Below are positions 30,901 to 59,960 of a stretch of DNA of 64,000 nt, in pieces. The position numbers and the translations under genes were made by a program. The number at the start of each line of letters is the position of its first letter. Position 1 is the first letter of the stretch. The DNA lies in NCBI GenBank assembly GCA_965644295.1, contig CBFFRP010000152.1, forward strand, positions 62,001 to 126,000, written 5' to 3'. The notes below the pieces were generated by a model. The model did not search any database and was not told where the DNA came from. It was given only the letters and a program-made list of their open reading frames with translations. Source of the DNA: Paraphysomonas bandaiensis. Lineage: Eukaryota > Protista > Chrysophyceae.

Positions 30901-33900
30901 GTAACTACAACGACGCGTTTTATCTCCATGACTGTGAAGGTTTGCTGTTCGTAAACAATGATCTGGATTATGAGAGTTTTAACAAATATACTCTTGTTGT
31001 TGGCGTGGTTACTGAAGGGGGTGCTATTTCATACGTCGATGTCGTCATTCATGTTGTTGATGTCAATGAGCAGCCGTCACTCACTGGGTCAACTTACTCA
31101 GTAGATGAACACTCTGCCGTTGGCACTGTTGTCATTCCTTCCTTAATGAGCCATCTTTCCGATCCCGATAGTCCAAGCTCTAGCTCTTTCACATTCACGA
31201 TTGTTTCGGGTAATAGTGGCGGCGTGTTCAGTTTTTCTGATCCTTCCACTGGCCAGTTGTCAGTTGTAACAGATGGACTAAACTTCGAGGCTATCTCTTC
31301 TTACATGCTGCAGATCCGTGTAACTGATCAGGGAGGGCTCCATTCAACCGCATCGTATACTATCAATGTTAATGATGTCAACGAGTACCCATGCTGTTTA
31401 CATGCGGTGGGCACATTCGCTACTATCGAGGAGAATATCGACACAGGTACTCGTGTAGGGATAGGAATAACAGCTTTCGACGATGACATCGGTCAAATCC
31501 TAACAGTTAGTCTCGTTGGCGGGAACACCGATGACGCTTTTTCTCTTACAGAAGTCGAGGAATCTGGCTCTACGTACTATTATATAGTGGCAGAGGACGG
31601 GTGTTGCGATGCGTCAAAGATACCAGTTTATCATTTGAGTGTGAAAGTTACAGATAATGGTTATCCACCACTATCGTACACGTGCGTTTACTCTATTGCT
31701 GTTAGTGAAAGCGAAAATTCTAATCCTATATCTATTCAGTCACCACTGAATTTTTCCATTGTCGAAAATTCGGGGCAGTATACGAATGTTGGAGACCCAC
31801 TTGATAACTATGTGACATCAGAATTTGATGTGAAGTGGTCGATTACAGATTACGGTGGAAATGTGGCTCATACATTCGCTATTAATGCAGTCACGGGTCA
31901 GCTGTTCTTGGATCTCTCTTTCTTGAGTTATGAACTCACTCCGGCTTTCAAATATGTTGTGACTGCACGTGACGCAGATGGGAACACTGCGGCCACAACA
32001 GTTAATATTCGCGTGGTAGATGTCGACGAAGCCCCGACCATGAGTTCCTGTCCTCCAGCTTTGAGGTATGAAAATGACCACACATGGGGAAATTTGTCGA
32101 TGAATGGTGACCCTGTGATTTATGAGGCTGATGACGACGACTCTACGTCGTTGACTTGGTCAATTGTTTCTGTGAATGGTGACTCTTCTCTTTCCTCAAT
32201 GTTCACCATAGTCCCATTTGACAGTGGTAGTAAAAGCGTATATATTCAGACATCTTGGGGTTATGATTACGAGTTTATCAACTCTTACGAGTTTGAGCTT
32301 GGTATCATGGATGGCAGCGGAAATTGTCTGTACAAGACTTGTACAGTCAGTGTTGGTAACGTTAACGATAATCCGACGATGTACTCCTCTCAAACGTGCT
32401 ATGTGTCGGGAAATGCTGACACAGGTACAGTTATTTGTGACGCCAATGCCCAGGATGGGGATTCCCCTACCGATCCGAACGGGTGGGGTACACTGACTTA
32501 TACCGCCAGTAGTCCCATTGATGGTGTCACTGTAGTGACTACTGGTACAATTGGCGAGATCAAGCTAACAAACTCAGTCCTGGGAAATGGGTGGTCGGAA
32601 GGCCAGACTATCACAGGGCTCGTTGTTCGTGCAACTGACGGGGGTGGCCTTTTTGTGGAGATGGATGTGACAATTGTGGTGATCGACACAAACGACCCTC
32701 CGACATGTCCATCCAATTCCTACGCCCCATTTCAAGTGGATGAGGGAACTCTAGCGGGTCATTATATTGGTACCCTGACTGGTACGGACCCTGTGCTCAC
32801 CATTACCGATGACATGTACCCTCTGGTCTGCGAAATTGCAGACGGCAATGCGGGTGGTCAGTTTGTCCTGAGTTCTGATTGCGTTCTGTCAACTGGCTCT
32901 GTGGCGTTGGATTACGAAACCAAAGCGCAGCATCAAATTCTGGTCAAGGCTACGGAAGTTACAGAGAGCCCGTTGTCAGTGTGGTGTGCGTTCTTTGTAG
33001 ACGTGATTAACATTCCAGATGAGGTGGATATGAGCCCCCAAACCTTTTATGTGGATGAGAACATTCCCTCTGGCCCTCTCAAAGCCGGTAGTGTCCCTGT
33101 AGGTCCTGTTATCGTTGCGGATCCTGAGGGCGGTGGAACTTTTTCTTTGTCATGCTCCAGTGTATCCGATTGTGGTGATGACCCCATAACTATCGATGCA
33201 AGTTCTGGGCGGCTCACCCTGAAGAGCGGATACAAATTGAACTATGAAGCGTTCAATATGTACAAATACACTGCGACTTATACAAGAGATTCTGAGACTG
33301 TATCCAACACTGTGACGGTGGTTGTTAACAACATCAATGAAGCGCCGTCCGCTGTATGTTCCGACTTCACAGTTGCGGAGTCTATTGGCAGTGTAACTGT
33401 TGGGTATATAGAAGCTTATGACCCTGATTTCGAACATGTCATTGACTTCGCGGCAGAATCATGCGGTAGCGATTGTGGTTTGAAGTATACACTGGTTAGC
33501 TGCAATGGTCCTTTCGAACTTCACGAATCCACTGGAAAGTTGTCAGTAACGAGCGGTGGTATCGATTACAGCAATGGTGACGTATATAATATTGCATATA
33601 TGGTAAAGGACCAGTATGGTTTATCGTCGGTGTGTTCAATTCGCGTGTACGTTACGGATGTAGATGATTGCGAAGTGACATCCATAACGGATATCAATGG
33701 CCACCTAGTAACAGCGGCAGACACTAGTGGTGGCTTACAACTCATTGTCATGGGAAAGAGCTTCGGACCTACTGCAAGCACTAGAGCTGAACTTGGTATC
33801 AGTGACTCCGACATATCTGTGTCTGCTCAATTACGTAGTGAAGCGTCCAGTGAGCTGTCGACGTATACGTATGACATGCATTGCACCATATACAGATCTT

Positions 33901-36900
33901 CTTCCGTGGATAACAGTGAGCTTCGTTGCTCTCTTCCTTCTGGTGTGGGTGCGAATCTGGGACTTGTAGTAACTATAAATACGGCTACTTCAAGTGATGT
34001 GGATACTTGCATTACACCATTCTCAGTATCGAGAGTGTCTTACGGACCGCCTGTACTAAACTCCATCAACCCAAATCCCTCTGATGATTCGGATTTAACA
34101 TTATACTTCTATGGGACCAACCTTGGTCCTGCTGGTTCTGCAATGAATCTTGTGTCAGGCACTTATAGCAATTCGTTTTTCTCGAATGAAATTGCTTGTA
34201 TCGTTGTTTCGTCACACACTCAAGTAAAATGCACTCCTACACATTGTTATGGTAGCTCGCTCTCATGGTATTTGACTGTGGGTGGGCAGCAGTCTAATAT
34301 TCTATCCAATGTTGCCTCTTGTCCTTCCCCTGAAATTACGGAAGTATTTGGTGGACTGTACCGAGAACTGAAGACATCTGGCGGGGAGGACTTCTATATC
34401 CGCGGGACGAACTTTGGTGATGAGATTTCCAACATAGTGGTAACATATGGACCTAGTGGTGAGGAGTATGTAGCGTCCTGTACAATCATCTACCTGGGAA
34501 CCCTGCTGCGATGTCTGTCAGCACCAGGGACAGGCGAAGGCCATACTGTCAAAATTGTCGTTGGGGATCAATCGTCATCATACCCCAATGCAGTGTCGTA
34601 CTTGACGCCCACCATAAGCGATATATACGGGCCCGGCTCACATAGCGGTACTCCGGGCAGAGAAGTCGTGTACATATCTGGGACTCAATATGGACCATTG
34701 TTTACGTCTCCATCAAACATTGTTGTCACATATGGCCCCACTGGAACGGAATACACTGCTGCTGATTGTCGCATAATCGCTGCACATGTGACTGTACAGT
34801 GTGAGACAGTTCCTGGAACTGGTGTGAATCATCTTTGGGTGATTGAAGTTGATGAGCAGAAGTCAAATGCTTACTCTTTCACCAATTATGCTCCACCTGT
34901 GATACATTACTACACAGGAAACGGAACAGAGTCTGGAACTGGTGGTCTACAGGTGGTCTACATTACTGGTGTAAATTTTGGGGCTACGTACGACACTGTA
35001 GATGCGGTGTACTACGAAGGCTACCTTGGTACTGTGTTTGATGCTACGAGTAAATGCACAATGTACACCCCACATGCGGTGTTGCGGTGCCTCACTTTAC
35101 CAGGCGCTGGATCTAAACTGGTGTGGACGATAATTGTGGATGGACAATCTACTACAACTCCATCGACGTCTTATGCCCCACCATTTATTTCTGATTTGAG
35201 TGGTGATGGGGTATATAATGCATCTGTGTATGGCGGCGAGTATGTCAATATATCTGGCGGTAATTTTGGCCCTCCGAACGCAATGGAGCTGTATGGTAAA
35301 GAGTTCTTGGAGTATGTTACATATGGACCCTCTGGTACTGAATACACTGCGCATGGATGTAAAATTTTATCGAGTGAACTTATGCAGTGTTTAACTGCTC
35401 CTGGGGTGGGTGGCGGGCATGTATGGAAAGTAAAAATTGCTGGACAGGAATCCCCTCTTTCTATTGTATCCAGCTCCTATTCTGCACCCCAGATTTTTTC
35501 TATCGTTCCTGATACAGGAAATACAGATGGAACCACTCTTGTATCTCTATTCGGCAGCAACTTGGCGACGCACACGTCCCCTGTTATTAAATTCGGATCA
35601 CAAGTTTTAAATGCATCCTCTGCTGGCTTTGATATGCTGAAATTTTTTGCTCCATCGATTTCGAACGTAACTCGCGTGCAGTATCTTATTTCAGTGATAG
35701 TTGGCAATCAGCAGAGTAACTTCAAAAGCTTCCAGTATAACTCACCACTGATTCGCTCAGTTAATGCATTTGCTGAAAGCGATGGGTCAACAACGTTGAA
35801 CATTCTTGGCTCTTCGTTTTCTCTTAAACCCGTCGTACGTATTCAAGTTGATGACAGGACTATTCTGCCGTCGTGTTCACCCTTGTCTCACAACGAGATT
35901 AATTGTAAAATATCGGTAAAATATGGTAACGTAACCGTCAGTACCCCTGTGGCCACTTCTAATGCACGTTACTTTCAATATGGTGAGCCAGTGGTTCTTC
36001 ACAGCGCACTCACTGGTGGACATGCAATTACGTCCGGGTACTCTCCTACCAATCCGGCAGTCTTATATATCATTGGTCAAAATTTCGGGTTCACCGTAAC
36101 AGACTTTGTGGTGTATATCGAGAACCGTGTCACCTTCAACACTGCCAGTTGTGATGTGATTAGTTTTACCTACACCAGCAAACTATCCCAACCCACCGCA
36201 TGGGAAGATCTAGCACAAAAAGTTAGCGGTGAGGATATAGCATCTGCCTTCCAAGAAGTGACATGCAAACTGCCTGCTGGGGAAGGCAAGGACAACTCTC
36301 TGAAGATTGCCAGGGGTGATTTAGAGTCACTTGGATGTGGATGCGATGTGTGCTCTAGCGAGACATGCCTCAGTTACTTGCCTCCATATATTGTATCCAT
36401 AACATCTCCGTGTGGAACACACGAGTGCGGGTCGAATATATGTGACGACGATGGCGATGATTCTATATTGACTGACGATGACTGGTGGCACGATGATGAT
36501 TATATTATTGAAGGAGACGACATTCTCCATGATGACGATATTGTTGTCACAGGAGACGATGATATATCCGGATTTGATGACGACAAGTCTACTAAGGACG
36601 ACGACAAGTCCAGCAAGGATGATGACAAGTCGACTAAGGATGACGATAAGTCCAGCAAGGATGATGATAAGTCGAGTAAGGATGATGACAAGTCCATGAA
36701 GGATGACGACAAGTTGACTAAGGATGATGACAAGTCGATGAAAGATGATGACAAGTCGATTAAGGATGACGATAAGTCTACTAAGGATGATGACAAGTCC
36801 ACTAAAGATGATGACAAGTCGACTAAGGATGATGATAAGTCGAGTAAGGATGATGACAAGTTAACAAAGGATGACGACAAGTCCACTAAGGATGACGATA

Positions 36901-39900
36901 AGTCGAGTAAGGATGATGACAAGTCGAGTAAGGATGACGATAAGTCTACTAAGGATGATGACAAGTTAACAAAGGATGACGACAAGTCCAGCAAGGATGA
37001 TGATAAGTCGAGTAAGGATGACGATAAGTCTACTAAGGATGATGACAAGTTAACAAAGGATGACGACAAGTCGATGAAGGATGATGACAAGTCTACTAAG
37101 GATGATGATAAGTCGATGAAGGATGATGACAAGTCGATTAAGGATGACGATAAGTCTACTAAGGATGATGACAAGTTAACAAAGGATGACGACAAGTCTA
37201 CTAAGGATGATGATAAGTCTACTAAGGATGATGATAAGTCGATGAAGGATGATGACAAGTCGATTAAGGATGACGATAAGTCTACTAAGGATGATGACAA
37301 GTCGATTAAGGATGACGACAAGTCTACTAAGGATGATGATAAGTCGAGTAAGGATGATGACAAGTCGATTAAGGATGACGATAAGTCTACTAAGGATGAT
37401 GACAAGTTAACAAAGGATGACGACCTGTCACCCACTCCATCTTCTGGAAGCCCCACTCATTCTCCAACTAAATTCCCTTCTGGTATGACCACCCCTAGTC
37501 CAGTGTTTGGTCCTGGTGAAGCGCCGTCGCCATCTCCCATAAATATGTGGACATCGTCTCCTAGCTCTGGGCCTACAATGCATTCTGTTGTCACACCGGC
37601 ACCAACTAAGTCTCCCACTCTGGCTCCCACATCGCATATTGCCCCTACCCCTATCCTGAGCTCAGGACCCACAACTGCACCGACTCGTATGCCGAGCAAG
37701 AAACCTACGACAGCCCCCGTTTCTGACCCGACCCCGCAGCCGTATTCATATCCTACACCAGGTCCTACTCCACGACCTGTCTACTACAGACGGGCACTCT
37801 CATCCACCGAGATATTGAATGTACCTACATCAGAGCGTCGCGTACTATACTACACGCCAACTTTCCACCCTACTCGTCAGCCTTCTGGCTATCCTACCAT
37901 TTCTCCTACCGTGTATTACCCTCCCACACGAGAGCCGACAACTGCACCTACGCGATCGCCATCACCATATCCGACTCGCTATCCCACTGCCCCCCCTACC
38001 GTATTTTGTCCTCCCACACCAGTACCAACAGATGTACCTACGAGATCACCATCACCACATCCGACTCGCTATCCCACGGCCACACCTACCGTGTATTACC
38101 CTCCCACACGAGAGCCGACAGCTGTACCCACGGGGTCACCAACTCCACATCCGACTCGCTATCCCACGGTCGCCCCTACTGTGTATTATATTCCAACATC
38201 TCGACCTTCGGAGCAGCCGGCATGCTCTCCAACAAGAACGCCCACATCGGCACCTTCTATCAAGCCATCGAAGTTACCAACACTGTTTCCGTCTTCTACT
38301 CCAACGGTTTTGCCTACCGTTGCTCCCACTTTGCATCCAACATCCAAACCAACATTGTACTCGTTCCCTACTCGCCCCCCAACAACTCTCCCAACGCCTT
38401 CTCCAAGTGGTGTACCCACTGTGCAACCCACATCTAGACCCAGCAGGCGTCCCACTCTATACCCGACGAGACCACCTACCCAGTTACCAACCTTAAAGCC
38501 GACATCTCCACCCACTCCCACTGCTATGGCACCTACTCCTTATCCCACTAAACGACCCACACACAGTCCGACTCGTCGACCGACTCGACGTCCAACAGCT
38601 TACCCTACTCCCACTCCTCCTGACGATGACAACGTCCCACCCACCGGAGATGACGATTCCTGCGTTGAAATTGCTGCATGCGGTAGTACGGAAGGAGGAT
38701 TCTCTATGGTTTTAAGAGGACAGAATTTTGGATCATCAAGACGAGTGTTTGTTGGGGAAACGGAATGGACAGTTGAAGACGCCAAATCTAATCATACATA
38801 TGTTGTTGTACATGGTCCTCCTGATGAAGGTTCTAATCTATTGGTCACAATGAGTGTAGGTAATCAGAATAATACCGCTCCGTTTAATCCAAATGACCCG
38901 AATGTATGTTATTTTTCGTATTTCATACCGGTTATCAGAAAAGGAATTTCAGATCTGGAAATCGGGACCTGTGATAGTCAAACTGTGCCAATACACGGTA
39001 GCAATTTTGGTATATCTGAACCGATTGTTAGACTCGGATCGAATAAACTAGAAGTAATTTCATTTTCCCAGAATTTACTTCTGGTCACTATACCTCCTGG
39101 CCAGGGCAAGGACTTAGTGTTGTCAGTAACTGTTGGCGACCAAACAGGATACTCTCCTGATACGTTCAGTTTTATTGCCCCATACATATCTTCCATTAGC
39201 ACCAATGGTACTGTGTATAGTGACGGTGGTCGAGCCAGTAATGTCACCGCCGTCCTGAAAGGGAGCAATTTCGGATACTTCAACCTGTCGTGGTCTTTAA
39301 CAGTCGGTCAGTTCGAAGTGCTGCCGTCAGATGTCGTCTCCTGGAGTTGTAATCGCATCGAATTTTTCCCTCCCGCGGGATGTGGGAAAAATCTTCGTGT
39401 AAAGTTGGCAGTGGGCGGTCAATTGGCTAGTAATGACCCGATTCATTTCTCTTATGCCCCGCCACTTATTACTGGCGGAGTATTACCATCTATTGTATCC
39501 ACAGACGGTACCTCTGTCATTGTCGTGTATGGAAAGTCATTTTGTGTTGACAGTATCCGAGTGTTCATATACGATAGACTTTATAAGACCAATGACAAAG
39601 ATCTCAGTCCTACCAAGTATCCCACACGAGCACCGACGTTTGCGCCAACACTTCGACCCACGTTGCAACCAACTCTGTCGCCCACTCGTATGCCTACTGT
39701 TCCTCCTACTGCTATTCCTCGTAGTCCAACTCCTGCGCCTGTGGCTACGAAGAAGCCGACCAATGCCCCGACGCCACGTCCTACTCGCCGCCCCACGACT
39801 CATCCTACACCATCCCCTACAAAGAAGAAGGACAAGTGGCATAAGGATGACTTAAATGACGATTTCTTCCCCACAGATGATAAGAATGTCGAAGACGATG

Positions 39901-42900
39901 ACTGGATGTCCAAGAAAGATGACAAAAGCTCGAAGGATGACGACAAAAGCTCGAAGGGCGATTCATCTTCAAAGGATGATGACAAGAGCTCTAAGGATGA
40001 CTTCTCTTCCAAAGATGACGATAAAACCTCGAAGGACGACGCATCTTCTAAAGATGACGATAAAAGCTCAAAGGATGATGACAAGAGCTCTAAGGATGAC
40101 GACAAAACCTCGAAGGAAGATTCATCTTCAAAGGACGACGATAAAAGCTCGAAGGATGATGACAGTGTATCAAAGGAAGATTCATCTTCCAAGGATGATG
40201 ACAAGAGCTCGAAGGAAGATTCATCTTCAAAGGATGACGATAAAAGCTCGAAGGATGATGACAGTGTATCAAAGGAGGATTCATCTTCCAAGGATGATGA
40301 CAAGAGCTCGAAGGAAGATTCATCTTCAAAGGATGACGATAAGAGCTCTAAGGAAGATTCATCTTCAAAGGATGATGATAAAAGCTCCAAGGAGGATTCA
40401 TCGTTTGACACAATTCGCTATTCCGACTTCCACTCGCTGCCTCTAGAGAATGACCTAGATATGTATGAAAGTCTTGATTACTTCACGGAGTCTGTTGAAG
40501 GTGCTACTTTTTTTGGTGCCCGATTTCCATTGCGTGAGCAAAATGAGCGCCGCCTTGATTCGGGTTTTTACTACATGCCACCTGTTGAGGTGCCTGTCCT
40601 TTCTCATAACAGTACAGCTCTTGAGTTTGTTATGCCGGCTGGAGCTGGCAGCAATCTCATTCTCTTGATTGCTGTTGGGAACCAGAAGACAGCGGTTCCT
40701 TTTGGGTATTCCCCGCCAATTGTTGAACGTTACTACTTATCCCATGGTGGTAGCGCTAGTGGCAGAGAGCTACTCCGAGTGTATGGCAAGAATTTTGGTG
40801 CAATTAACTCACCCTTAAATGTGTACATTGGAGACGAGGCGTGCATCGATCCTCAGCTTAAAACGGATATCGAAGGCGTTCAGTTCATTGAATGCACTAC
40901 CCCTGCCACCACTGTCGGTGACAAGGTGATAAGAGTCGAAGTTGCCTTTCATCAGGTTACTTCTCCAATCCCTTATTATGTTGAGTGTAAGGCTAATACC
41001 TACGGTGCTGAGGGTGAAAAGTGTAGTCTCTGCGGCGTTGGTGCGGTGTGCGATATGGACGGAATGTACGCGCCAAAGTCGGCCAGTGGTTTTTATGTAT
41101 CTGAGGTTCCAGTTCCCAGTGATTTATGTACTCCGGAGAGCCAGGTGAATCGAGATACCTGCCCTGCTGTTATGCGCTGTGTGCCAGCAGATTCTTGTAC
41201 CGGAAACAATGGCTGTGCTGAAGGATATAAAGGGGAACGCTGTGGGAACTGTGCCGACGACTACTATAGGATCAATGGAAAATGTCAACAGTGTCCAGAT
41301 ATTCCTTGGGCGTTGTTTTTCTTTACTGTACTCGCTGTCAGTGTTGGTTTCTATATCGCCTATAAACTAAACCAGAAAAACGTTTCATTGGGTATTCTAG
41401 CGATTGGGATCGACTATATGCAGGTGCTTGGCATATTCGGTACCGCCAATGTCGATTGGCCTGAGGCTATTGTCAATATGTATAACGCATTTTCTATTTT
41501 CAACTTCAATATCGACGTCATTGCCCCTGGGTGCTGGGGTCATATGGAATTCACATTCCGAGATAAGTGGATTACTGTGTCTGTCTTGCCACTCGTTGTG
41601 CTTGTGCTGTGTGGAATACTTTTTGGTGGTTACGCTATATTCATGCATTATGTAAAGCACAGTCGAAAAGGTAGCTCTATATTTTACAAGTTTATTGGTG
41701 TTTATGTCATGCTGTTTTACTACGGCTACATCATGCTTGCCAACAACACACTGGCTGTGTTCAACTGTCAGCCAACCGACCCCTCTGATGGAAGCAAGTA
41801 TATGGTTGAAGTTGGTACAAATGGCGGGAAATGTTATGAACCCGGTACTCTGCAGCAGCAGCTAGAGCCTTGGGCAATTCTTTGTCTGATATTTTACGTT
41901 ATCGGATTCCCGCTTTTCGTTGGATATATATTATTTACCAACAAGGAAAAGGTGATGTATGCTCAAGTAATCCGCGCCTCAGGAAGTGCCGAAGCCGAGT
42001 TAAACGAAAAGCCGGCAATGACTAAGTTTAAAGCTATGTATACACGATTGTACTATCAGTTCAAACCTGAATTTTATTTCTGGGTTTTCATGATATTAAT
42101 GCGAAAGTTTGCCCTCACAGTATCAGCCGTTATATTCAGAGAAAACATTATCTTCTTGCTAGCACTTTATATCCTTATTTTATTTGGTTCCTACACCCTA
42201 CAAGTGGGACATCGCCCCTACATGTCCACGTCGGAGTACCCAGACGTTGTAGTGAACTACTCCTATATGCTGAATGAGGTCTCGCAAGATATTATTGCAA
42301 AGTCCGATCAGAAAGTCAAGTTAAAAAAGCGTGCTGCGCGTGCTCGTTTAGGCACGAATGCTCCTCTATTTCAAGTTCTCACTCCGCAGCTTTCATTTTT
42401 CAATAACTACAATACTGTAGAATCGTATCTTCTGTTTTCTGGCATATTAATATGTATTGGTAAGTAGATGCTGTGTATATACTTTATTTTGTTAATTTGT
42501 GTATATAGCTGGAATTATGTTTGAAAGTGGGCAATTGGACAGTATGCAGACGGACTCTTTGGCAGTAATTGTTATCATGATTGTCACTATATCTCTTCTT
42601 TACTTCGCCTGGGTTCTGTTTGGTGAGTTATGGATCGCGTTCTTCCCCGATTCCCCTCTTCCGCTGCTATGTATCAAAGTGTCTGAAGATAACGAAGTGT
42701 ATAAACCTCACCGTCAGTCCGGGAGTGTATCTCAGATCAAATATCAGGACCAGAACCCGCTTATGCGGACTGTTGAACCCAGGATGCAAGCTGTGCCCAC
42801 CACTGACACATATCACAGTCCACATGATGTATCGATCACAATTGACAGTGAAGATCAAGCACTCAAGTCAGAGGTTGATGAAGATATGTCTACAGACATA

Positions 42901-43092: not shown

Positions 43093-43268
43093 GAAGTGAT
43101 TAATTTTGCCATACTTTGCGTTTATGTTATGAATGAGTAGTGTATTTAGTACCGCAATTATTTAAGCCGAAAGTAGTGTGCTTACGCTCTGAATATTATC
43201 TGGGGTTGATGTACTGGGGAAGTATAAGTCGTAATTGATTGGTACGGTAATAACACGGTATGAATGCC

Positions 43269-45578
43269 ATTCTTTATTTTCTCAGTGTATATCCCTCAAT
43301 CTGTCCAGCACTGAAATAACTACCAGCAACTCTTTCGGCCCTATTGTATGTGTAAACTTTTTGATCTTTGCCAGCTTTTTCTCCTAATTCCAATCGAGAC
43401 CTCATTGGGCCGAGTTTTTAGGCTGTGGTACTCCGCTGTAGTCATTTCAAGAATATATTTCCCAACCCACCAACCAGTATTTGCAGCATATGACTGGGCA
43501 AAACTTCCTTATCGGGGCCATCATCAGGTAATAACGCCTTGATCGCTATCACTATGTATTGGTTTGCTATCTGTAATACATCTGCGTCATGTTTATAAGC
43601 CTCTCCTAATATAGAGTATTGTATCTATTCACTTTTCTTCACACGTTTTAACGTAATTTAATTCATTCTTACCTCGCGGTTTGCTTGGCTTAGAAGGCAG
43701 TTTCACCGGGTTGGTGTTCTGGACAGTGTATTCTCGGTTTGGTATATTTTATGGTATAAATGTTAAGAGTACGAAGCTACTTGACGGTCATGTGGTATAC
43801 CCCTAAATATGCAGGTTTATCACGCCTTCTAAGCTTAGAACAATGTAAATTTGGGCATTAAACAGTAGTCATGAAATTATTTACTATAGCCAAGTCCTAG
43901 AAGAAAAAACGTTATAGAGAATTATATGTTGCATGATTCTTACCATCGACTCTGAGCGAGCCCTGTCATTATTAATGCCCCTACTAGCCCCCCAATTAAT
44001 CCTACAGCTACTGATATGGCTGTAGTAGAAGCACGGATAATTTATGCTCATTATATATTTAATAGAACTAGCGCAAAACCATATTAAGTAGTAGTTTATC
44101 AAAGTTTGATTGAAACAGTGTCAGGTGTTAGGAGAATCAACGAAAACCGGAAAGACAATTATTTGTGTGTGCCTAAAAAAGAGAGAGAAGAGAGCAATAG
44201 TTTTTTTCGAGCTTACCACGACCTCATCACCACTACAGATCATGATTCACTTTCCTATTCAGTGTAATTCTATTAGTTTGTTAATATGTGGTTCAAAATG
44301 ATACACAATCACAAACACTTACAGTTGTGTGGGAAATCAATATAATATGACTATATATACTTCATTATCAGATAGATGCCACATACAATAAAACGGACGA
44401 AAAAATGATTTAGATGACGATGTAAGTGATTTTAATATCATATGACCAATGATGCAGAGATTATCTATATCATCGTCCAGAAACTCTTCAATTCTATTAA
44501 CAAACCAACAGTCACAGACAGTTTACTCAAACATGTGAAGATTTTATTAATAAAATACAAGCAAAGGTCGATTCTATTAAAAAATTTCCCCGCCACTAGT
44601 AGTATATAGCAAATCTAGTTATTAGCTCTAGTCTATAGACATAAACTAGTTTCTGTACGCAACCGTACTCATGTAATAATCAGACTTTCATATATTAAAA
44701 ATTTTACTTTTCACCCCAAGATATCAGTGGCAAAAGGATCCTTGAATGGAGGGAGAGTTACAGAAAATGTGGAGTATTTACAGTACTCTCATTGAAGGAA
44801 TAGTTACAGATTGGGAGGTATTTGTAAAGGAGGTTATGTTGCAATACAACGTTTTGAGGGTTTACAAGCATTGAACACTCATTATTGTCGCAATTATTGA
44901 AACGATAAGTTGAACAATTCTTTACAAGGTATTGAATCATTGGATGTGTGAGTTCAAATAAAAGCTAACTACATGAAATTAGTTAATGCAAAAATATACG
45001 GTTCACAAGAATAACTTCATGTATTCCTAATAAATTTATATGATGCTTCCTAATGAAGAGTATCAATTAAATCTCAAGGGTATTTTTTCCCGGAGTGTTA
45101 CTTATACCTGATCAATTCATCGCAAACTGCATTTCTGTCTTTCAAAATCTCAGCAGAATGGCTGTCGGACGAAGGCTGGTTTATTTGTACACAATGTAGA
45201 TATGATGCGGTACTGTTGAAATATCTGATGCTTGCTTTCCATCTCTTGCGATAATGAAAGAGATTTGCATGGAACCACTGCTCTAGTCCTGAATGTTTGA
45301 CATCACACAACGAATGTGATTATCCATCCTTCATCTTCTTCAGTCGTATCGGCATCCTGTGTATATTTTTGTTCATATATGCCTCTAATATTGAGACAAC
45401 AATTATGTGTATTCCAGCTGTAGTTGTATGTAAGTAATATAGAGGATATTTACTTCAATTAATTACCGCTGCTGCCTGCCGATACGATATTCTTCCAGAT
45501 TTTTACATGCTATTTTGGGGTGGGTGTGTACCATATTCTACAGGATGTTCCATATGAACTACATCTACAACCCACCGC
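43269..45578. repeat. Long direct repeat, copy 1 (paralogous to 51260-54112)
   Basis: Near-identical from ATTCTTTATTTTC-CAGTGTATATCCC to CTACAACCCACCGC with reciprocal indels; duplicated short ORFs (MCKLFDL, MIQYLVK, MCDVKHS). Confidence 0.95.
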
Positions 45579-45590
45579 ATCAGGCAGACA

Positions 45591-45723
45591 CGTCGAAGAG
45601 AAAAATACGGTACACTGTCAACTCATTAGCGGATGCTAAAGATCAATACGGACAGAATACCCCCGTTATATTTCGTATAGTCTCCACACTGTATCAACAC
45701 GAGGTCAAACAAGAAACATGATA
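45591..45723 (-). mobile_element. Diverged LTR fragment related to the adjacent copia LTR (may continue at 48767-48808)
   Basis: CGAAGAGAAAAATACGGTAC...GGATGCTAAAGATCAATACGGACAGAATACCCCCGTT aligns with CGCAGAGAAAAAACACGGTAC...GGATGCTACAGATCAATAAACGGACGGAATACCCCCGTT. Confidence 0.75.
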
Positions 45724-46035
45724 CTTCGCGCAGAGAAAAAACACGGTACTCGGTCGGAAGTCACGGATGCTACAGATCAATAAACGGACGGAATACCCCC
45801 GTTGCCTTTTCACACAGTCTACACTACAGGTAGTCAAAAGCAAGGTTCTCTTCGCAGTTACTACAGAACTCGTTAGTAAGAGAAAATTATGCTTCTAGTC
45901 TACAGCCGTACACAACACACTGCATAACATAACACCATACACCTCTATGTGCCCTATGCATATCTTATACAGTCACTTCAAGTACTAAACTGAAAAGAAC
46001 ATCCTCTCATTTCTCTACGCACCCCTGTGATGTGT

Positions 46036-46713
46036 CTATGCTTCTCCGACGATACGACACATCAAATGACGAAACAATTTCCCTTGTAGGGGTTTAGTCA
46101 GCACGTCAGCCAACATCTCTCCTGTAGGTAAGTACTGAAGCTTCACGTCTCCCCTATCATGGTGTTCTTTGACTAAAGCCTGCCTTACTCGTAGATATTT
46201 CGATCGGTATTTGCCTCCTCCTTTCGTTACGAGGCTGAGAGTAGATGCATTGTCCTGGAATATTGTAGGTGAGTCCATTATACACCCCTGACCACACAGG
46301 AACTCATGCAATTTCATCACACACGGCAGCATGTCAGAGAGTGCGACCAATTCCGACTCAGTGGAGTCCTTAGTGACCAGTTTCTGCTTTGTCGACCGAC
46401 AAAGCACCGCTGCATCACCCACGCTGACCACCACTCCGGTATGGCCCTTTCCATCCTGATGTGTCGCAAATGATGCGTCAATGTATGATTTCACCTGAAT
46501 CTTATCTCCTATTCGCAGGTGTAAATCTTGGTTCTTGGTGGCCGCCAGGTACTTCAACACTCTCCCCAGCTTCTGCTTGTCATCTTGAGTCGGGTCCTTC
46601 ACCCTAGTAGCCAGGTACGCAATAGACAACAAAATATCCGGCCTCACCCTTGTTGCCAGGTATAGCAGCTTTGCCACCACTGTGTGGAATTCTGCGGCGT
46701 CTCTCTTGCCCAA
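46036..46713 (-). pseudogene. Copia RT C-terminus + RNase H fragment
   Basis: LLYLATRVRPDI, YIDASFA, DSTESELVA, FQDN, MLADVLTKPLQG. Confidence 0.92.
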
Positions 46714-48457
46714 TTTCTGCTCGGACGCTGAAGATGTCTGAGTAGAGCCTCTGCTCTTGCTGCATCTCCGATTTCAGTGCGGTGTCTACGTACTGGCGCC
46801 CCGTTTTTTTGTGAGTGTGCTTCCCGCGCACTGACTCGTATGGGGTTCCATATATCTCGAATGCTCTCCGTACGTCACTTGCGGTGAGTTTCAGTCCTGT
46901 TATGTTGCCATCACTGACTAAGTTGATTGCGTCTTTCTCAGAGTCAAATCCCGAGGTCTTGACTAAATCCCATGCCTCTCGTGCTCGAGCCACTTCGGCC
47001 TTCGAGTGCCTCGCTTCCATGTCGGCTACTGTTGTGACATGTACGTTTCCAGTGGCCCAGTCTCGCATATCAGCGACGTACATTTTGTTCCTTCTTGCGA
47101 ATACCAGGTCTCTACCAGGTAAATGCACAGTATACGATTTGCCTTGCACATATGTTACATCGTACATATCCTCCACATCTGATTGACATAGCACACTCGC
47201 ACGTAAATGATCAGCCGTTGTGCAGGGAAAGAATTGATCCAGATCTCCTACATTTGGTAACTCCATAGCGTGCCCTGAGAGTCCTGCCACGGTACATTTC
47301 CTGGTCGCCGGCCTTATATTGTGCAGTAATGCAGGGTGAACCACTGACACGTCCGCCTGATTATCTAGCAGTACCTCGTACCACCTGAATGGGTGGCCTC
47401 CGGATGTGAATGCGTTCTTTAGGGTCACCGCACAGTTTCTCTCATCTGCATCTTGGTTGTCAGGGCATTCATTGAGTCGGTGCCCTGGCTCGCCGCACCC
47501 CCAACATATCAGGGGTTTCCTCCGTTGTTCTCTGTGCCGTGGATTCTTCTGCCCCCTTTTGGATTCTTTGTCGTCTCTGTCGCCATTTTCGTCACTGTCA
47601 CTTGCGCTGTGTTTCCCTTTGCTGGTAGTTTTGCGTTCAGCTTTGGTGACGAAGGCTGCTCCTCCTGCCGCGCGTGTCTGCTTCCTGGCCGGTAGGTATT
47701 TAGAAACCTTGTTGTATATGTCGTTTATGTGTGTGGGTGCAATCTGTGTTCCCATGGTTAGGTCGTTCAGATAATTAGTCTTGAAGTCGCTGTATCTCGC
47801 GTCGTCTAGTCCGTTAAAGAAGTCCATCGCCACATCGGTGTCGGACATTTTGGCGTTGTCCATTTCTTTGTATGCTTCCAGTAAATAATCAAATTTCTCC
47901 TTATATGTCACGATGCTTTCGAAAGTTCCTTGTCGAACTTCTTGGTACTTTCGCCTAGTTTCCGCTTTCATTACTGCTCCCACATTGGAGCTTGTCGCCA
48001 CCTTGTGTGTCTTTTTTATTGCAAGCCATAGCGATAGTGGATCTTTCGTTGCGTTGAACTCTTGATATTCGTCTAATAGTTTTATAGCGTCGTGGGATTC
48101 GTTGCTCAGGTGCTGTATCATGAATCCGTACAGTGGGGTTCTGTTCTTGGCCATCTCTCCTATGGCCCGAGATCTTCTGATGCATTGATCTTCGATCTCC
48201 TTGTACCCGATGGGGTCTGTCCTCGGATTGACATCCCTGGTGTCGGGTCTCGGTGGCTCGTAGTACTGGTCAGTCTCCAGCATCTTTGCAAGGTCTCCGT
48301 ACCTCACCATGGCTTCGGCCACCAATTTCTGCTTGAAAATAGGCAGATTACATTTTGCGCCATATCTTAGCATTGGCACTGCGTCATAACTGTCAGACTC
48401 TTGTCTTCTTCCAGATCTTGGATATCTGGGATATCTCTCTTTTGTCGTTTTCTTCAT
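46604..48457 (-). CDS. Copia Gag (CCHC knuckle) - aspartic protease - truncated integrase N-terminus
   Basis: CWGCGEPGHRLNEC; protease LLDNQADVSV (CoDi-like DNQ variant); DVRRAFEIYG and LYSDIF, then out of frame at the deletion junction ~46717. Confidence 0.9.
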   Translation of the reverse strand: MKKTTKERYPRYPRSGRRQESDSYDAVPMLRYGAKCNLPIFKQKLVAEAMVRYGDLAKMLETDQYYEPPRPDTRDVNPRTDPIGYKEIEDQCIRRSRAIGEMAKNRTPLYGFMIQHLSNESHDAIKLLDEYQEFNATKDPLSLWLAIKKTHKVATSSNVGAVMKAETRRKYQEVRQGTFESIVTYKEKFDYLLEAYKEMDNAKMSDTDVAMDFFNGLDDARYSDFKTNYLNDLTMGTQIAPTHINDIYNKVSKYLPARKQTRAAGGAAFVTKAERKTTSKGKHSASDSDENGDRDDKESKRGQKNPRHREQRRKPLICWGCGEPGHRLNECPDNQDADERNCAVTLKNAFTSGGHPFRWYEVLLDNQADVSVVHPALLHNIRPATRKCTVAGLSGHAMELPNVGDLDQFFPCTTADHLRASVLCQSDVEDMYDVTYVQGKSYTVHLPGRDLVFARRNKMYVADMRDWATGNVHVTTVADMEARHSKAEVARAREAWDLVKTSGFDSEKDAINLVSDGNITGLKLTASDVRRAFEIYGTPYESVRGKHTHKKTGRQYVDTALKSEMQQEQRLYSDIFSVRAEIGQERRRRIPHSGGKAAIPGNKGEAGYFVVYCVPGY

Positions 48458-48886
48458 AATTTTCTCTTACGCAGAGAAAAAACACGGTACTCGGTCGGAA
48501 GTCACGGATGCTACAGATCAATAAACGGACGGAATACCCCCGTTGCCTTTTCACACAGTCTACACTACAGGTAGTCAAAAGCAAGGTTCTCTTCGCAGTT
48601 ACTACAGAACTCGTTAGTAAGAGAAAATTATGCTTCTAGTCTACAGCCGTACACAACACACTACATAACATAACACCATACACCTCTATGTGCCCTATGC
48701 ATATCTTATACAGTCACTTCAAGTACTAAACTGAAAAAGAACATCCTCTTATTTCTCTACGCTTCGTACGTCCTTCTCCATATAGTATTATCAATCACTC
48801 TTCTTACGAACACAAAGAGCTCTACAGACTATACATACATACAAACATACATACATATTATCGTAGTTGATATCATTGTATTTAAG

Positions 48887-50047
48887 ATGAGTGATATCAA
48901 TGCAGAAATAGAGCATATTGAGACTGAAATAAGCCAAATTAATGCCCAGATTCGAAGCGTGGAATCTTCAATCGAAGATGCGGAAGTGAAAGAAGTTGGG
49001 AGGGCTAAACTGGAACGTTTGATTCAAGAGAAGAAAGATTTGCGCGAAGAGAAAAAGTTATTACTTGAAGAGAGAAAGTCATTACGCGAACGTTTGGGCC
49101 GAAAGGAGGAGCATATGTACCGAATGGAGGAGTTACGTGAAGAGAGGAAGTTGAGAGGTGAACTTGAACTTCGATCGACTTCAGGTAACTGAATTTTCAG
49201 TTTGTGTGTACTGCTGCATTTCAAACCGAGTCGTTCGCTCTTTGGATATATGCATGTATGTATGTATGTATGTATGTATGTATGTGTAGATTGAGGTACA
49301 TGTAAGAGGTGCATCTATCTGCTCATGTATATTTAATTATTCATATCTCTTATATTTGATTTGATATGTATATTCTGACATCTCCAGCCACAGGAACCGC
49401 TCCTCCACAAGGTAAACGACATTGTGATGTGCTATATAAATAATAACTGATCATATCACACGACGATTGCTTGTATATGATTTATATATTACTGCTACAT
49501 GATAATCCCACCCTCCAGTACAGTACTATATAATCTATCTACACTATATATTCTGTTCACAGCTGCTCCTGTAGCCACTGTCTTTGAGAGTGTGCAGCAG
49601 CCTCAGCCTCCACAGAAATTGTATTCTGTTGAAATGATGTTGAGAGATGCGAATGGTCAACTGGCTACACTGGCAGGCTACAGGGGATTTCGTAAGTATG
49701 TTGTTGACAAAGCGATGGAATTAGGTGTAACTGGGACCATCCAGCGGTATCATCATTATGACATTAAGATTTATTTTGAAGGGTATTCGGAACAGCTCGA
49801 TAACTTTTTCGATTTTTTTCAGACATGTATTGAGCAACGAATGATTGCTACTTTTGATAATGTTTTGGAGGGTGAGATACCTCGTCGAAGGCAACGGAAG
49901 TTTTATATTGTTGTGGACCACTCAAGAACCACTGAAAGAAATGGAAAAGTCAAGAAAGGTCCTCACTCAAACCATACCGAGTACGATAAAATCAGTGACT
50001 ATTCAGCCGACTCCGGGGCGGTGTTAGGATTTCATAGACCTCACTAA
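48887..50047 (+). CDS. Coiled-coil N-terminus + acylphosphatase-like domain (3 exons incl. 18-24 nt microexon)
   Basis: Exons 48887-49184, 49388/49394-49411 and 49563-50047 join in frame; GFRKYVVDKAMELGVTGTIQ...IYFEG...LDNFFDF resembles the acylphosphatase fold. Confidence 0.65.
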
Positions 50048-50507: not shown

Positions 50508-51259
50508 TGCCCCATTCTGAGCGCGTACTTAGTAGATTCGGATGGGGGCCGGGTGGGTACCTAACAAATGCTTGATTTAAGCAGGGCTGCGTACCAATTA
50601 ATTGCCAATTAATTGACGCAGGCTGTAGTCAATTTTAATTGCAATTATTACTTGCTGTCTCAATTTCAATTATTGCAATTAATTGCAATTATATAACACT
50701 AAACTACATTAGCTGCCAATATAGCTACCTCAACTGTCTTTTCATTCCAGAGGCGACGGTTCATGCGTAAAAACATCAGTAACTCCAAATGCCGAGGAGT
50801 CATACTCTTGCGCAAATCCGTCATAACAATCTTAGCTCTACTGAACAACCTTTCATAATTCTCTATCTACAGGAAGCTACAGGCGCCATTTAAGAAAACT
50901 TCTTATTACACGCTCTCCCTAGGTCCACATGACCATACACACCTCACGGTGAACATACTACAATAACACACAGTTGCCCCATATTGACAGCGTAACTAAT
51001 TACTGCGTGCGGCCCCCCAGTGGGTGCTGCCGAGTGCTGCGACCGCGCACTTCTATCTATGTACACATTGCTTAGTTCAGCAGTTCCCCACTCTGGGTTC
51101 TCACTGCATATTCAGCGCTGAATACCGTGTGATAATGATGTAGCTAGTTGGGTTAGGTAGGGAGCTATCAAATAACGTATGGGACTTAAATCAAGTATTA
51201 GTTAGGTACCCACCCGACCCCCATCCGAATCTACCTAAGTACGCGCTCAGAATGGGGCA
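50508..51259. mobile_element. Non-autonomous element with ~75-bp terminal inverted repeats (MITE-like)
   Basis: TGCCCCATTCTGAGCGCGTACTTAG...TTGATTTAAG at left is inverted at 51185-51259; related partial copy at 57899-58035; no clear TSD. Confidence 0.8.
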
Positions 51260-54112
51260 ATTCTTTATTTTCGCAGTGTATATCCCTCAATCTGTCCAGC
51301 ACTGAAATAACTACCAGCAACTCTTTCGGCCCTGTTGTATGTGTAAACTTTTTGATCTTTGCCAGCTTGTTCTCCTAATTCCAATCGAGACCTCATTGGG
51401 CCGAGTTTTCAGGCTGTGGTACTCCGCTGTAGTCTTTTCAAGAGTATATTTCCCAACCCACCCACCAGTATTTGCAACATATGACTGGGCAAAACTTCCT
51501 TATCGGGGCCATCATCAGGAAATAACGCCTTGATCACTATGTATTGGTTTGCTATCTGTAATACGTCTGCGTCATGTTTATAAGCCTCTCCTAATATAGA
51601 GTATTGTATCTATTCACTTTACTTTACACGTTTTAACGTAATTTAATTTATTCTTACCTCGCGGTTTGCTTGGCTTAGAAGGCAGTTTCACCGGGTTGGT
51701 GTTCTGGACAGTGTATTCTCGGTTTGGTATATTTTATGGTATAAATGTTAAGATTACGAAGCTACTTGACGGTCATGTGGTATACCCCTAAATATGCAGG
51801 TTTATCACGCCTTCTAAGCTTAGAACAATGTAAATTTGGACATTAAACAGTAGTCATGAAATTATTTACTATAGCCAAGTCCTAGAGGAAAAAACGTTAT
51901 AGAGAATTATATATTGCATGATTCTTACCATCGACTCTGAGCCCTGTCATTATTAATGCCCCTACTAGCCCCCCAATTAATCCTACAGCTACTGATATGG
52001 CTGTAGTAGAAGCACGGATAATTTATGCTCATTATATATTTAATAGAACTAGCGCAAAACCATATTAAGTAGTAGTTTATCAAAGTCTGATTGAAACAGT
52101 GTCAGGTGTTAGGAGAATCAACGAAAACCGGAAAGACAATTATTTGTGTGTGCCTAAAAAGAGAGAGAAGAGAGTAATAGTTTTTTTTCGAGCTTACCAC
52201 GACCTCATCACCACTACAGATCATGATTCACTTTCCTATTCAGTGTAATTCTATTAGTTTGTTAATATGTGGTTCAAAATGATACACAATCACAAACACT
52301 TACAGTTTTTGTATAGTATGACTATATATACTTCATTATCAGATAGATGCCACATACAATAAAACGGACGAAAAAATGATTTAGATGACGATGTAGGTGA
52401 TTTTAATATCATATGACCAATGATGCAGAGATTATCTATATCATCGTCCAGAAACTCTTCAATCTATTAACAAACCGACAGTCACAGACAGTTTACTCAA
52501 ACATGTGAAGATTTTATTAATAAGATACAAGCAAAGGTCGATTCTATTAAAAATTTTCACTTTTCACCCCAAGATATCTGTGGCAAAAGGATCCTTGAAT
52601 GGAGAGAGAGTTACGGAAAATGTGGAGTATTTACAGTACTCTCATTGAAGGAATAGCTACAGATTGGGAGGTATTTGTAAAGGAGGTTATGTTGCAATAC
52701 AACGTTTAGAGGGTTTACAAGCATTGAACACTCATTATTGTCGCAATTATTGAAACGATAAGTTGAACAATTCTTTACAAGGTATTGAATCATTGGATGT
52801 GTTAGTTCAAATAAAAGCTAACTGCATGAAATTAGTTAATGCAAAAATATACGGTTCACAAGAATAACTTCATGTATTCCTAATAAATTTATGTGATGAT
52901 TCCTAATGAAGAGTATCAATTAAATCTCAAGGGTATTTTTTCCCGGAGTGTTACTAAGACCTGATCAATCAATCTGTGGTAGTGAAACACTGTACGGCCA
53001 ACTGTACGGCCAACTGAATTTAATCAATCGACATGGGATGCCGTTCGGAAGACAGGAAAAACTGAGAACAAGCTTGCTCTTTTTTTAAATTTCATTGGAC
53101 TAGGTAAACGTTTTCATGATGTTTTTCCAGATGATGCAAGATACAAGATTGAAGTATGTACACAACAACTAAGGTATGTAAAAATTCATGAAAACAGTAT
53201 ACAGTATACCATGTGACGAAGATCAAATGAAGATGGGTTTATTCACGAGCGACGTGTTTTCAGAAGCTGCCAGAGTATTGAAATTGAAATGGAGTGATAT
53301 ATTTGATGATTCACTAAGGCTAGTTAGTATCTAGTTCTAATAATTAGCTGTGGTGGTGTACCCCTAAAGGGTATACCGGCTTATTATAATTCAACAGTGT
53401 GTTTTAACAACACAATTTGAAAGTATATTACTACATTATGGAGAAACAAACATAAACGCAGCATTATACAATATTTTTGATGACTTATATACACAATGCT
53501 ATCAACAATGTTTGCATAATAATATTGACTCATCGTTGCGACCATACGATTATATATATAAAAAATCCATAACCAAAATATGCGGAAGACGGAGGAATAA
53601 ACCATAATGTTGTGGTGGTACTTGTTGTTGAAACGGAACGCACAACAATCATGCATTTAGTCGGCATTGTGAAACTGTTCCAAGAACGCACATGCATCTA
53701 AATATGCTGATGCAACAAATGGTGTCCCCCACACATCATTATTCTCATAATAATGCCTGGCTTCAATGGGGTCGTCCAGGTCCAATTCATCGCAAACTGC
53801 ATTTCTGTCTTTCAAAGTCTCAGCAGAATGGCTCGCAATACTGTCGGACGAAGGCTGGTTTATTTGTACACAATGTAGATATGATGCGGTACTGTTGAAA
53901 TATCTGATGCTTGCTTTCCATCTCTTGCGATAATGAAAGAGATTTGCATGGAACCACTGCTCTAGTCCTGAATGTTTGACATCACACAACGAATGTGATT
54001 ATCCATCCTTCATCTTCTTCAATATTCTTCCAGATTTTTACATGCTATTTTGGGGTGGGTGTGTACCTTATCTACAGGATGTTCCATATGAACTACATCT
54101 ACAACCCACCGC
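51260..54112. repeat. Long direct repeat, copy 2
   Basis: See 43269-45578; carries ~0.8 kb (~52970-53780) absent from copy 1. Confidence 0.95.
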
Positions 54113-58531: not shown

Positions 58532-59960
58532 TTAGTAAAAAGGCGAATTGCTTGTAAACGCATTAATCATCGATAAAGCAGCCTCAGGCTGATCCATTGG
58601 CACCATATGGCCGGCCTCCTTCACCTGGAGAAAAGTAAGGGAGCCTCCAGCGCCACTGGTACTGCTAGCGCTGCGCGCCCATCCCCCAAGCTGAGTACGG
58701 GCCTCGTCGTAAAACCACTCGTGATCACCTTCGGCATGGAAAGCCTCACGTCCGTCCCAGGCAATTGCGAGAGTCCACGCCTTGTTTCCCATCCAGTTGC
58801 AGATAAAATCGGTGTCTCCAGCATATATGAGAACACGAACGCCACCTTCAACCATTGGCGCTATAGTACCTTGAAAGTTTTTCATCCAATCGTAGGGAGC
58901 GATGGCAAGATCCACAGCGGTATTACACGAGACCCACTCCTTCACCTTGTCTGACACATGAAGAGCATCACGGGTAGACTCCAGATTAAGAAAGACGTCT
59001 AGGTTAGAGAAATCATAGCAGAGGTCGCTTTCCCCGCATGGTTTGCGGATGTCGTAAGGATTCAGCCCGGTACGGTAATAGGGCGTAGTTTCAACGAGAT
59101 TACAGTAGTCATCCGCAGGTAGACAAAGAGAGGTGTTTCCCTGGCATGCGGCAATCAGCTTCTGGCAGAAAGGCAGTCGGTCAACCATGTTTTCGTAGGT
59201 CTCTTCAGACACACATTTTATATCATAGGTGTTATTCATAGCCATCTGTGGATAGTAGCCATACTGGATCAGTGGATCCGTAAGGCCGTTGCCAACCCCT
59301 ACTCCTTTGAGATTGATCTTGACAGTGCCCTCTAAAGCGGCCTGATTGCCCTCAAAAATTCGAGAGGATATTGCTGGTGCGTAGTGGCCTCCGTAGCTTT
59401 CACCGAATACAAAAAACTCGTTTTCTGCGTACTGGGGATTGGAAATAAAGAATTCCTGAAGAAAATTGTACATATCCTGCGCATAAAACATAACTATTAA
59501 ATAAATAACATAACCACAACAATGAACGAACCTCAGCAATCTCTGTCTCATTGTGGTCGAGATCTTTAATGGGTGCACCATACGAATATCCGACATGAGC
59601 TGGCTGGTCAACCCACATAACATTCGCATTATTATTCCATGAATAGGGATTATTAATGGTAGATAGGCCATCTTCAGAGACTGTACAGGGACCATTCTCA
59701 GTGAGAAGACCGAGCTGTGAAGAGCAGCCTGGACCCCCATTGAGCCACATGATAAGTGGATCAGTTGATGGGGTATCACGCGATTCAAACATCCAGTAGA
59801 AATAGTTTTTATTAATGCCTGAATCAACATGATAATAACCAGACTGACTCTTAACTGTAGAGTCACAGAGACCGCCTTCGACTGGTTCACTCTTGAGGAT
59901 ACCACGTGCAAAGGACGTAGGTAAGAGTAGTAAAGAAGCGGCGGTGAGGATTGATTTCAT
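58532..59960 (-). CDS. Serine carboxypeptidase, family S10 (CPY-like), one intron ~59479-59531
   Basis: Signal peptide MKSILTAASLLLL, WLNGGPGCSS, VDQPAHVGYSY, GESYGGHY, YAGDTDFICNW, AGHMVPMDQP. Confidence 0.95.

Follow-up and report, generated by a model that had tools for sequence, protein, structure and literature searches.

Structure of the element and the inverted repeat at its gag border

The 64-kb stretch of Paraphysomonas bandaiensis DNA analysed here (contig CBFFRP010000152.1, referred to as the window) carries a 3.03-kb Ty1/copia-type retrotransposon on its minus strand. The element is bounded by two long terminal repeats (LTRs) of 99% identity and by a 5-bp target duplication, as is typical of copia elements. 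At the border between the 5' LTR and gag, we observe a single perfect inverted repeat of 16 nucleotides (nt), with arms 146 nt apart (Table 1). One arm occupies the place of the primer-binding site, the other lies inside the LTR. This arrangement suggests that the element may prime reverse transcription on its own RNA and not on a transfer RNA (tRNA), similar to the retrotransposon Tf1.

With up to two mismatches allowed, the window contains three occurrences of the 16-mer, at 48455-48470 (+), 48617-48632 (-) and 45876-45891 (-). The expectation is 0.05 occurrences, and none of 100 shuffles reaches three. Shuffling the leader gives the same picture, with 0 of 1000 shuffles yielding an inverted repeat as long as 16 nt. 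A chance origin of the repeat, which we considered, is ruled out by these shuffles of window and leader. On the sense strand, the LTR-terminal G at 48470 is followed by TAAGAGAAAATT and then by the ATG at 48457-48455, and gag begins 13 nt past the LTR. The N-termini of related proteins align to this ATG. It is the homologous start and therefore the true gag start. Reading the sequence directly after the LTR, we find no tRNA primer site of the TGG type. The last base of the LTR is itself part of the pairing. An earlier note on this DNA had described the repeat, its copies in both LTRs, the lack of a TGG-type site ahead of the gag ATG and the orientation of the LTR arm, whose 3' end meets the border of the unique 5' region (U5) with the primer site and points into U5. 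All of this is correct as described.

The 16-bp duplex alone has a free energy of -18.5 kcal/mol. In every minimum-free-energy fold that we computed for the leaders of the window element and its relatives, the terminal duplex is kept and closes a structured multibranch loop; in the window element it closes the fold as a whole. Two short boxes in the window LTR recur in relatives (Table 1). The second, CCTGTA[C/G], may serve as a signal for processing, polyadenylation or packaging. The shorter CTGTAG has four occurrences in the window LTR.

Table 1. Features of the Ty1/copia-type element in the window (+ strand numbering; sequences in sense orientation)
Feature	Position	Strand	Remarks
5' LTR	48470..48761	(-)	292 nt, CGTAGAG...CTCTGCG; direct repeat with 3' LTR; ends fixed by 5-bp target duplication
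3' LTR	45729..46019	(-)	291 nt; two substitutions and one single-base indel relative to 5' LTR
Target-site duplication CGAAG	upstream copy 48762..48766, downstream copy 45724-45728	(-)	read from sequence
LTR arm, proposed self-primer, CATAATTTTCTCTTAC	48617..48632	(-)	at or next to proposed transcript 5' end; identical copy in 3' LTR at 45876-45891
TAACGAG box	48610..48616	(-)	directly 3' of LTR arm; identical in L002 and L003; TAACAAT in L008; TAAAGAG in L012
CCTGTAG box	48565..48571	(-)	within the R-U5 loop; most relatives have CCTGTA[C/G] at the same place
Primer-binding arm GTAAGAGAAAATTATG	48455..48470	(-)	G 48470 as end of the LTR, 12 further nt and gag ATG (48457-48455)
Open reading frame of 617 amino acids (aa), gag (CCHC zinc knuckle) and protease region	46604..48457	(-)	out of frame past the deletion junction
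Internal deletion junction	46715..46735 (approximate)	(-)	reading frame shifts here; tblastn of P0003, P0005, P0007 and P0010 against the element
Open reading frame of 225 aa, C-terminal (RNase H region)	46036..46713	(-)	52-58% identity to C-termini of full-length relatives
Polypurine-tract-like ACAGGGGTG	46020..46028	(-)	directly upstream of 3' LTR; kept in relatives

The window copy is an internally deleted, non-autonomous LTR retrotransposon. Both of its open reading frames (ORFs) align to the ends of the polyproteins of full-length relatives, and residues from ~565-660 to ~1220-1320 of these relatives have no counterpart in the window element. About 650 residues are absent by tblastn, comprising the integrase and most of the reverse transcriptase, and the copy is therefore non-autonomous. 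The features of the copia class are nevertheless found, namely LTRs, a 5-bp target duplication, a polypurine tract before the 3' LTR and, in relatives, a reverse transcriptase of the Pfam family RVT_2.

Relatives in aquatic metagenomes

A search with the 617-aa ORF against 1.8 billion representative proteins gave 1886 matches. The best of them share ~40% identity with the query, and many are full polyproteins. We fetched the DNA of several of these matches, and a metagenome scan with a gag alignment of four sequences added 18 loci. The relatives examined share ~25-56% gag identity with the window element and come from metagenomes and one NCBI assembly. Hundreds of related polyproteins are present in marine and freshwater metagenomes. 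No plant sequence is found among the best 150 of the 1886 matches, nor among the best 120 matches listed for a full-length relative, all of which are metagenome proteins. We assign the window element to a large undescribed copia clade of aquatic protists.

The polyproteins of full-length relatives have 1419-1559 aa. Two of them, P0007 and P0003, match RVT_2, the copia-type reverse transcriptase, with E-values of 1.6e-34 and 1.6e-23. The domain lies in the C-terminal third (residues 1052-1289 of 1419), and the ~450 residues ahead of it leave space for an integrase. For integrase and protease, we obtain no Pfam match even at E 5 (P0007 residues 380-1050, P0003 residues 600-1080). Both domains appear to be very divergent in the clade, and the polyproteins are long enough to hold them.

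The LTRs of the window element end in CG...CG and not in the usual TG...CA. CG...CG ends are also observed in L003 (LTR 2485-2956) and L030 (LTR 2037-2483), and 5-bp duplications fix the boundaries in these three families. L032, a more distant relative, has TG...CA ends. The target duplications of the relatives are TTGAA in L003, CACAT in L030 and CCTTG in L032. LTR finders that require TG/CA would miss elements of the window subgroup.

Conservation and covariation of the pairing

The repeat is a property of the clade. In 17 families including the window element, an inverted repeat of 9-17 nt is found at the same place, and all 17 sequences are different (Table 2). In the loci with enough upstream sequence, the LTR contains the reverse complement of the bases that directly follow it; L020 is the one exception. 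In several loci the upstream sequence is too short for this comparison.

Table 2. Primer-site arms in the 17 families (window, L001/L013, L002, L003, L004, L008/L009, L011, L012, L016/L017, L018, L019, L021, L023 and L029-L032)
Locus	Primer-site arm	Length	Remarks
Window	GTAAGAGAAAATTATG	16 nt	
L001	GTTTAAAAGT	10 nt	
L013	GTTTAAAAG	9 nt	same sequence group as L001
L002	ATTAAAGGAAAAAG	14 nt	
L003	GTATTAACAAAGAA	14 nt	
L004	GTTGACAGTAAATAA	15 nt	
L008/L009	GTGACAAGAAATTA	14 nt	
L011	GTAACAAAAG	10 nt	
L012	GTAAAACTATATTA	14 nt	
L016	GTATATTTAAATTAT	15 nt	
L017	as L016 with one mismatch	15 nt	same family as L016
L018	ACAAAAGAATAAAGAA	16 nt	
L019	ACAATTGAATTGAATAA	17 nt	
L021	ATAATTAAAATAT	13 nt	
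L023	TAATTAAGTAT	11 nt	
L029	GTTAAAATTAAAAG	14 nt	
L030	GTAAAAGCAAAATAG	15 nt	
L031	GTTATAGCAAATAAG	15 nt	
L032	ACAAAACAAGT	11 nt	

The two arms of a family match each other better than those of other families. Comparing nine positions, with the U5 border as anchor, gives 8.7 matches for the two arms of one family and 4.1 for arms swapped between families. The LTRs of the window element and L008 can be aligned base by base and display matching changes on both arms. The observed lengths are hardly ever reached in shuffled sequences (0 of 1000 for repeats of at least 15 nt, 0-2 of 1000 for 13-14 nt). The pairing is of the Watson-Crick type and in nearly every family perfect and free of G-U pairs. 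None of the primer sites of the 17 families starts with TGG, and the LTR arms are rich in U, with 54% T and 5% G on the DNA level. The putative primer-binding site of the clade is complementary to this U-rich stretch of 9-17 nt in the LTR of the element itself and not to a tRNA.

The position of the pairing is equally conserved. The repeat abuts the U5 border in each of the 17 families. In the window element, L003, L030 and L032 it begins exactly at the last LTR base as verified by the target duplication. The spacing between LTR arm and LTR end stays within bounds (56-186 nt), and the part of the LTR upstream of the arm varies between ~125 and ~385 nt. This fits the division of an LTR into a unique 3' region (U3) and a repeat region followed by U5 (R-U5). 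The distance between the duplex and the gag ATG ranges from overlap in the window element over 0-3 nt (L001, L008, L011, L012, L030, L031 and L032) up to 92 nt.

These comparisons bear on further claims of the earlier note. The idea of a copia lineage using its own RNA as primer is supported by 17 families with differing, self-matching arms. The complementarity in autonomous relatives, whose absence had been named beforehand as a refuting outcome, is kept through changes on both arms. The duplex was also said to cover the gag ATG, and this holds in the window family; in the relatives, 0-92 nt separate the duplex from the ATG downstream. With the overlap particular to the window family, a switch between translation and replication is speculation.

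Position of the putative transcription start

The 5' edge of the LTR arm carries a conserved dinucleotide. In 13 of 15 loci we find a CA whose A lies at -1, 0 or +1 relative to the first paired base of the arm. The contexts are TCA|T and TCA|C, and the window element has aagCA with both bases paired. An initiator of the type YCA(+1) is found in many eukaryotes, including stramenopiles, and the CA at the arm edge resembles it. We infer that this CA may mark the initiator, which would place the transcript start of the window element at ~48631-48632. The start near 48632 put forward in the earlier note would thereby gain indirect backing. Contig ends were rejected as evidence for the start site, as the breaks and wraps of the short contigs at LTR borders stem from the assembly.

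Proposed self-priming mechanism

The site that primes the minus strand must be the base following U5, with the 3' end of the primer pointing into U5. In every family, this place is held by the complement of the element's own LTR, with the 3' end of the LTR arm oriented into U5. By analogy with Tf1, transcription would start at the A of the conserved CA, at the LTR arm or 1 nt before it. The 5' end of the RNA would then fold back over the R-U5 loop of 56-186 nt and pair with the bases directly after U5. The RNase H of the element could cut the LTR arm near the U5 border, and the freed 3' OH would be extended into U5 to give minus-strand strong-stop DNA. Should the primer be copied when the plus strand is made, the primer site would be rewritten in each cycle to match the LTR arm. 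Such rewriting, which also takes place with tRNA primers, would account for perfect pairing without G-U in almost all families.

We consider Tf1-like self-priming as the best explanation for the pairing, at a probability of roughly three in four. Anatomy, position, conservation and covariation of the pairing are observed here, and the transcription start, the RNase H cut and the extension from it are inferred. Several observations weigh against it. The repeat has only 9-10 nt in three families, and 10-mers are reached by 49-64 of 1000 shuffles. These short repeats are not significant alone and would count only by their homologous position. No repeat is found in L020, one of the more distant loci. 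As the families are related to each other, they do not represent independent cases. The window copy itself is missing reverse transcriptase and integrase. The start site is placed solely by the initiator-like CA, and among the loci compared for the CA there is no conserved TATA box ~30 nt upstream of the arm. Finally, tRNA fragments as primers are excluded by argument from the sequences.

Alternative explanations of the pairing

The pairing could be a structure of the genomic RNA that serves cyclisation of the 5' end, packaging, dimerisation or translational control, while another RNA acts as primer. Long-range pairings are present in the leaders of other retroelements such as Ty1 and retroviruses, the duplex closes a multibranch loop in all folds, and in ~8 of 17 families the gag ATG lies within the duplex or at most 3 nt from its end. 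The same proximity also speaks against this explanation, since a gag that begins within 0-3 nt leaves no room for another primer site. Moreover, the pairing of every family starts exactly at the U5 border, where the 3' end of a primer must sit. Strict Watson-Crick pairing without G-U is what a site templated by a primer should show, and an RNA helix does not require it. We therefore regard a purely structural role as unlikely.

A slightly less likely explanation keeps the LTR arm as primer and moves it in trans. The primer would be cleaved from another genomic RNA molecule in the particle, or from a further transcript that stems from an LTR. Use in cis and in trans would look alike at the sequence level, and the 16-mer is also present in the 3' LTR. 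The bounded loop of 56-186 nt and the conserved boxes within it, in contrast, suggest an intramolecular fold.

The weakest explanation is a host tRNA, a tRNA half or another host RNA as primer, with an incidental match in the LTR; tRNA halves do serve some copia elements (PMC6317226), and the CAT at the start of the window arm could, in our own reading, recall the anticodon of tRNA-Met, but the 17 families have 17 different sites that are each matched by their own LTR, none of which begins with TGG, the base composition of the arms is unlike that of nuclear tRNA stems, and a chance match of 14-17 nt to the own LTR is nil in shuffles, which makes this explanation very improbable. One shared tRNA or tRNA half is excluded as primer because the 17 sites differ and none starts with TGG, and seventeen host RNAs that are each matched by chance in the respective LTR are not credible. 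The window and 21 of the fetched loci contain no tRNA genes. In an Rfam scan of 45000-49500, no family matches the element; two weak microRNA-like matches lie outside it, at 49237-49314, where the sequence is of low complexity and rich in TATG.

Comparison with known self-priming and tRNA-independent elements

Self-priming is established for Tf1 of Schizosaccharomyces pombe and inferred for the Tf1/sushi group of gypsy elements. In Tf1, the first 11 nt of the transcript pair with the primer site, and RNase H cleavage between nt 11 and 12 yields the primer (PMC7175516). Tf1/Tf2 and the Tf1/sushi elements, which are Ty3/gypsy chromoviruses, share with the window clade a primer site that directly follows the 5' LTR and complements the element's own LTR. 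The pairing stretch of Tf1 is the 11-nt end of the transcript; the arms of the window clade measure 9-17 nt, are found 56-186 nt ahead of the LTR end and have an initiator-like CA on their 5' side. The pairing of the window clade differs in that it regularly includes the last base of U5, and one of its subgroups has the CG...CG ends described above instead of TG...CA. The traits of Tf1/sushi membership (a gypsy-type reverse transcriptase, an integrase after the reverse transcriptase and a chromodomain) are not those of the window clade. Its best reverse transcriptase family is the copia-type RVT_2, and no chromodomain is seen.

For copia elements, self-priming was put forward earlier, as a proposal for Houba and Osr-1 of rice and as a prediction for the TAR lineage of plants (PMC6317226), and the novelty that the earlier note attached to a self-priming copia element was overstated in this respect. 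The TAR elements, including Houba and Osr-1, are likewise copia-type without a tRNA site and carry a complement of at least 10 bp to the 5' LTR at 0-5 bp past the LTR (PMC6317226). Applying this published definition of a self-primer, the window element has 16 bp from the last LTR base onwards, and the arrangement recurs in the 16 other families. In contrast to TAR, the host of the window element is a stramenopile protist, and its relatives come from aquatic metagenomes. The likeness of the window clade to TAR may reflect common descent or convergence.

Fungal GalEa copia elements also have no primer site of the tRNA type and possess a conserved hairpin instead (PMC5445492). The hairpin is a 9-bp palindrome that spans the LTR end and has no complement in the LTR (PMC5445492). 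The window element has the reverse, a complement in the LTR and no local palindrome at 48455-48475, and it does not carry a hairpin site of the GalEa type. The CoDi elements of diatoms resemble the window clade as copia-type elements of stramenopile algae that are also found in ocean metagenomes, and a primer site is not described in the main paper on them (PMC2806351). A full-text search of the literature for self-priming in stramenopile elements found nothing.

Surroundings of the element and irregular relatives

A fragment of ~75 nt at 45594-45667, ~60 nt downstream of the element, has 80% identity to the last part of the LTR and terminates in ...CTCTTCG, as in family L008. It is the remnant of a related LTR, and the element therefore adjoins or sits within an older insertion. 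The element is flanked by two copies of a ~2.3-kb segment (43266-45578 and 51257-54112) with 96-98% identity and several indels. The segment contains no ORF longer than ~70 aa and may be another repeat family or a segmental duplication. A single ORF of 4598 aa extends over 28671-42467 (+) and contains tandem 39-nt units (40029-40436, spacing 21/39 nt). Its product is probably a giant repetitive protein. A carboxypeptidase gene near the element (58532-59911) has 92% identity to an MMETSP transcript. It shares 68% identity with a protein from Epipyxis, a chrysophyte, and 63% with one from Ochromonadaceae sp. CCMP2298, which points to a chrysophyte-like stramenopile as host and not to human.

Three relatives are irregular in structure. 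The 3' LTR of L030 (7235-8807) is split by a DNA transposon of the Tc1/mariner type, with a gene that matches DDE_3 and HTH_Tnp_Tc3_2. Its insertion site is a TA that follows the proposed self-primer at a distance of 3 nt. L031 has an identical sequence of 361 nt on both flanks of the element (1622-1982 and 7541-7901), and its 3' LTR is without the last 5 nt, which suggests a rearrangement or an insertion into a repeat. In L029 (GCA_040384245.1, contig JAWVHA010005924.1), three copies follow each other head to tail at intervals of 4662 nt, neighbours having a single LTR in common, either as a tandem array or as an effect of the assembly.

Significance

The way in which the first strand is primed is a defining trait of LTR retroelements and ties them to the tRNAs of their host. 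This dependence also exposes them to host defences that are based on tRNA fragments. To our knowledge, experimental proof of self-priming exists only for Tf1, and for copia elements computational prediction has been limited to plants. The mechanism has precedents, in copia elements as a prediction; new are the clade, its breadth and the covariation record. With 17 protist copia families whose arms covary, the self-primer trait would be widespread beyond fungi, vertebrates and plants. The families represent a natural set of covarying pairs of primer and site for tests of the mechanism. The pairing also offers a simple handle for annotating such elements in the genomes of algae, as they would escape tools built around TG...CA ends and tRNA sites.

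Beyond that, there is a tentative possibility, which we hold to be rather doubtful, that self-priming is ancestral and universal in a very large undescribed copia clade of stramenopiles and other aquatic protists and arose independently of Tf1/sushi and plant TAR. A single duplex at the 5' terminus would then combine the CA initiator with primer formation and, in many families, with the gag ATG. If true, this would strengthen the idea that priming on the own RNA, and not on a tRNA, is the older state of LTR retrotransposons, as raised before (PMC3601003).

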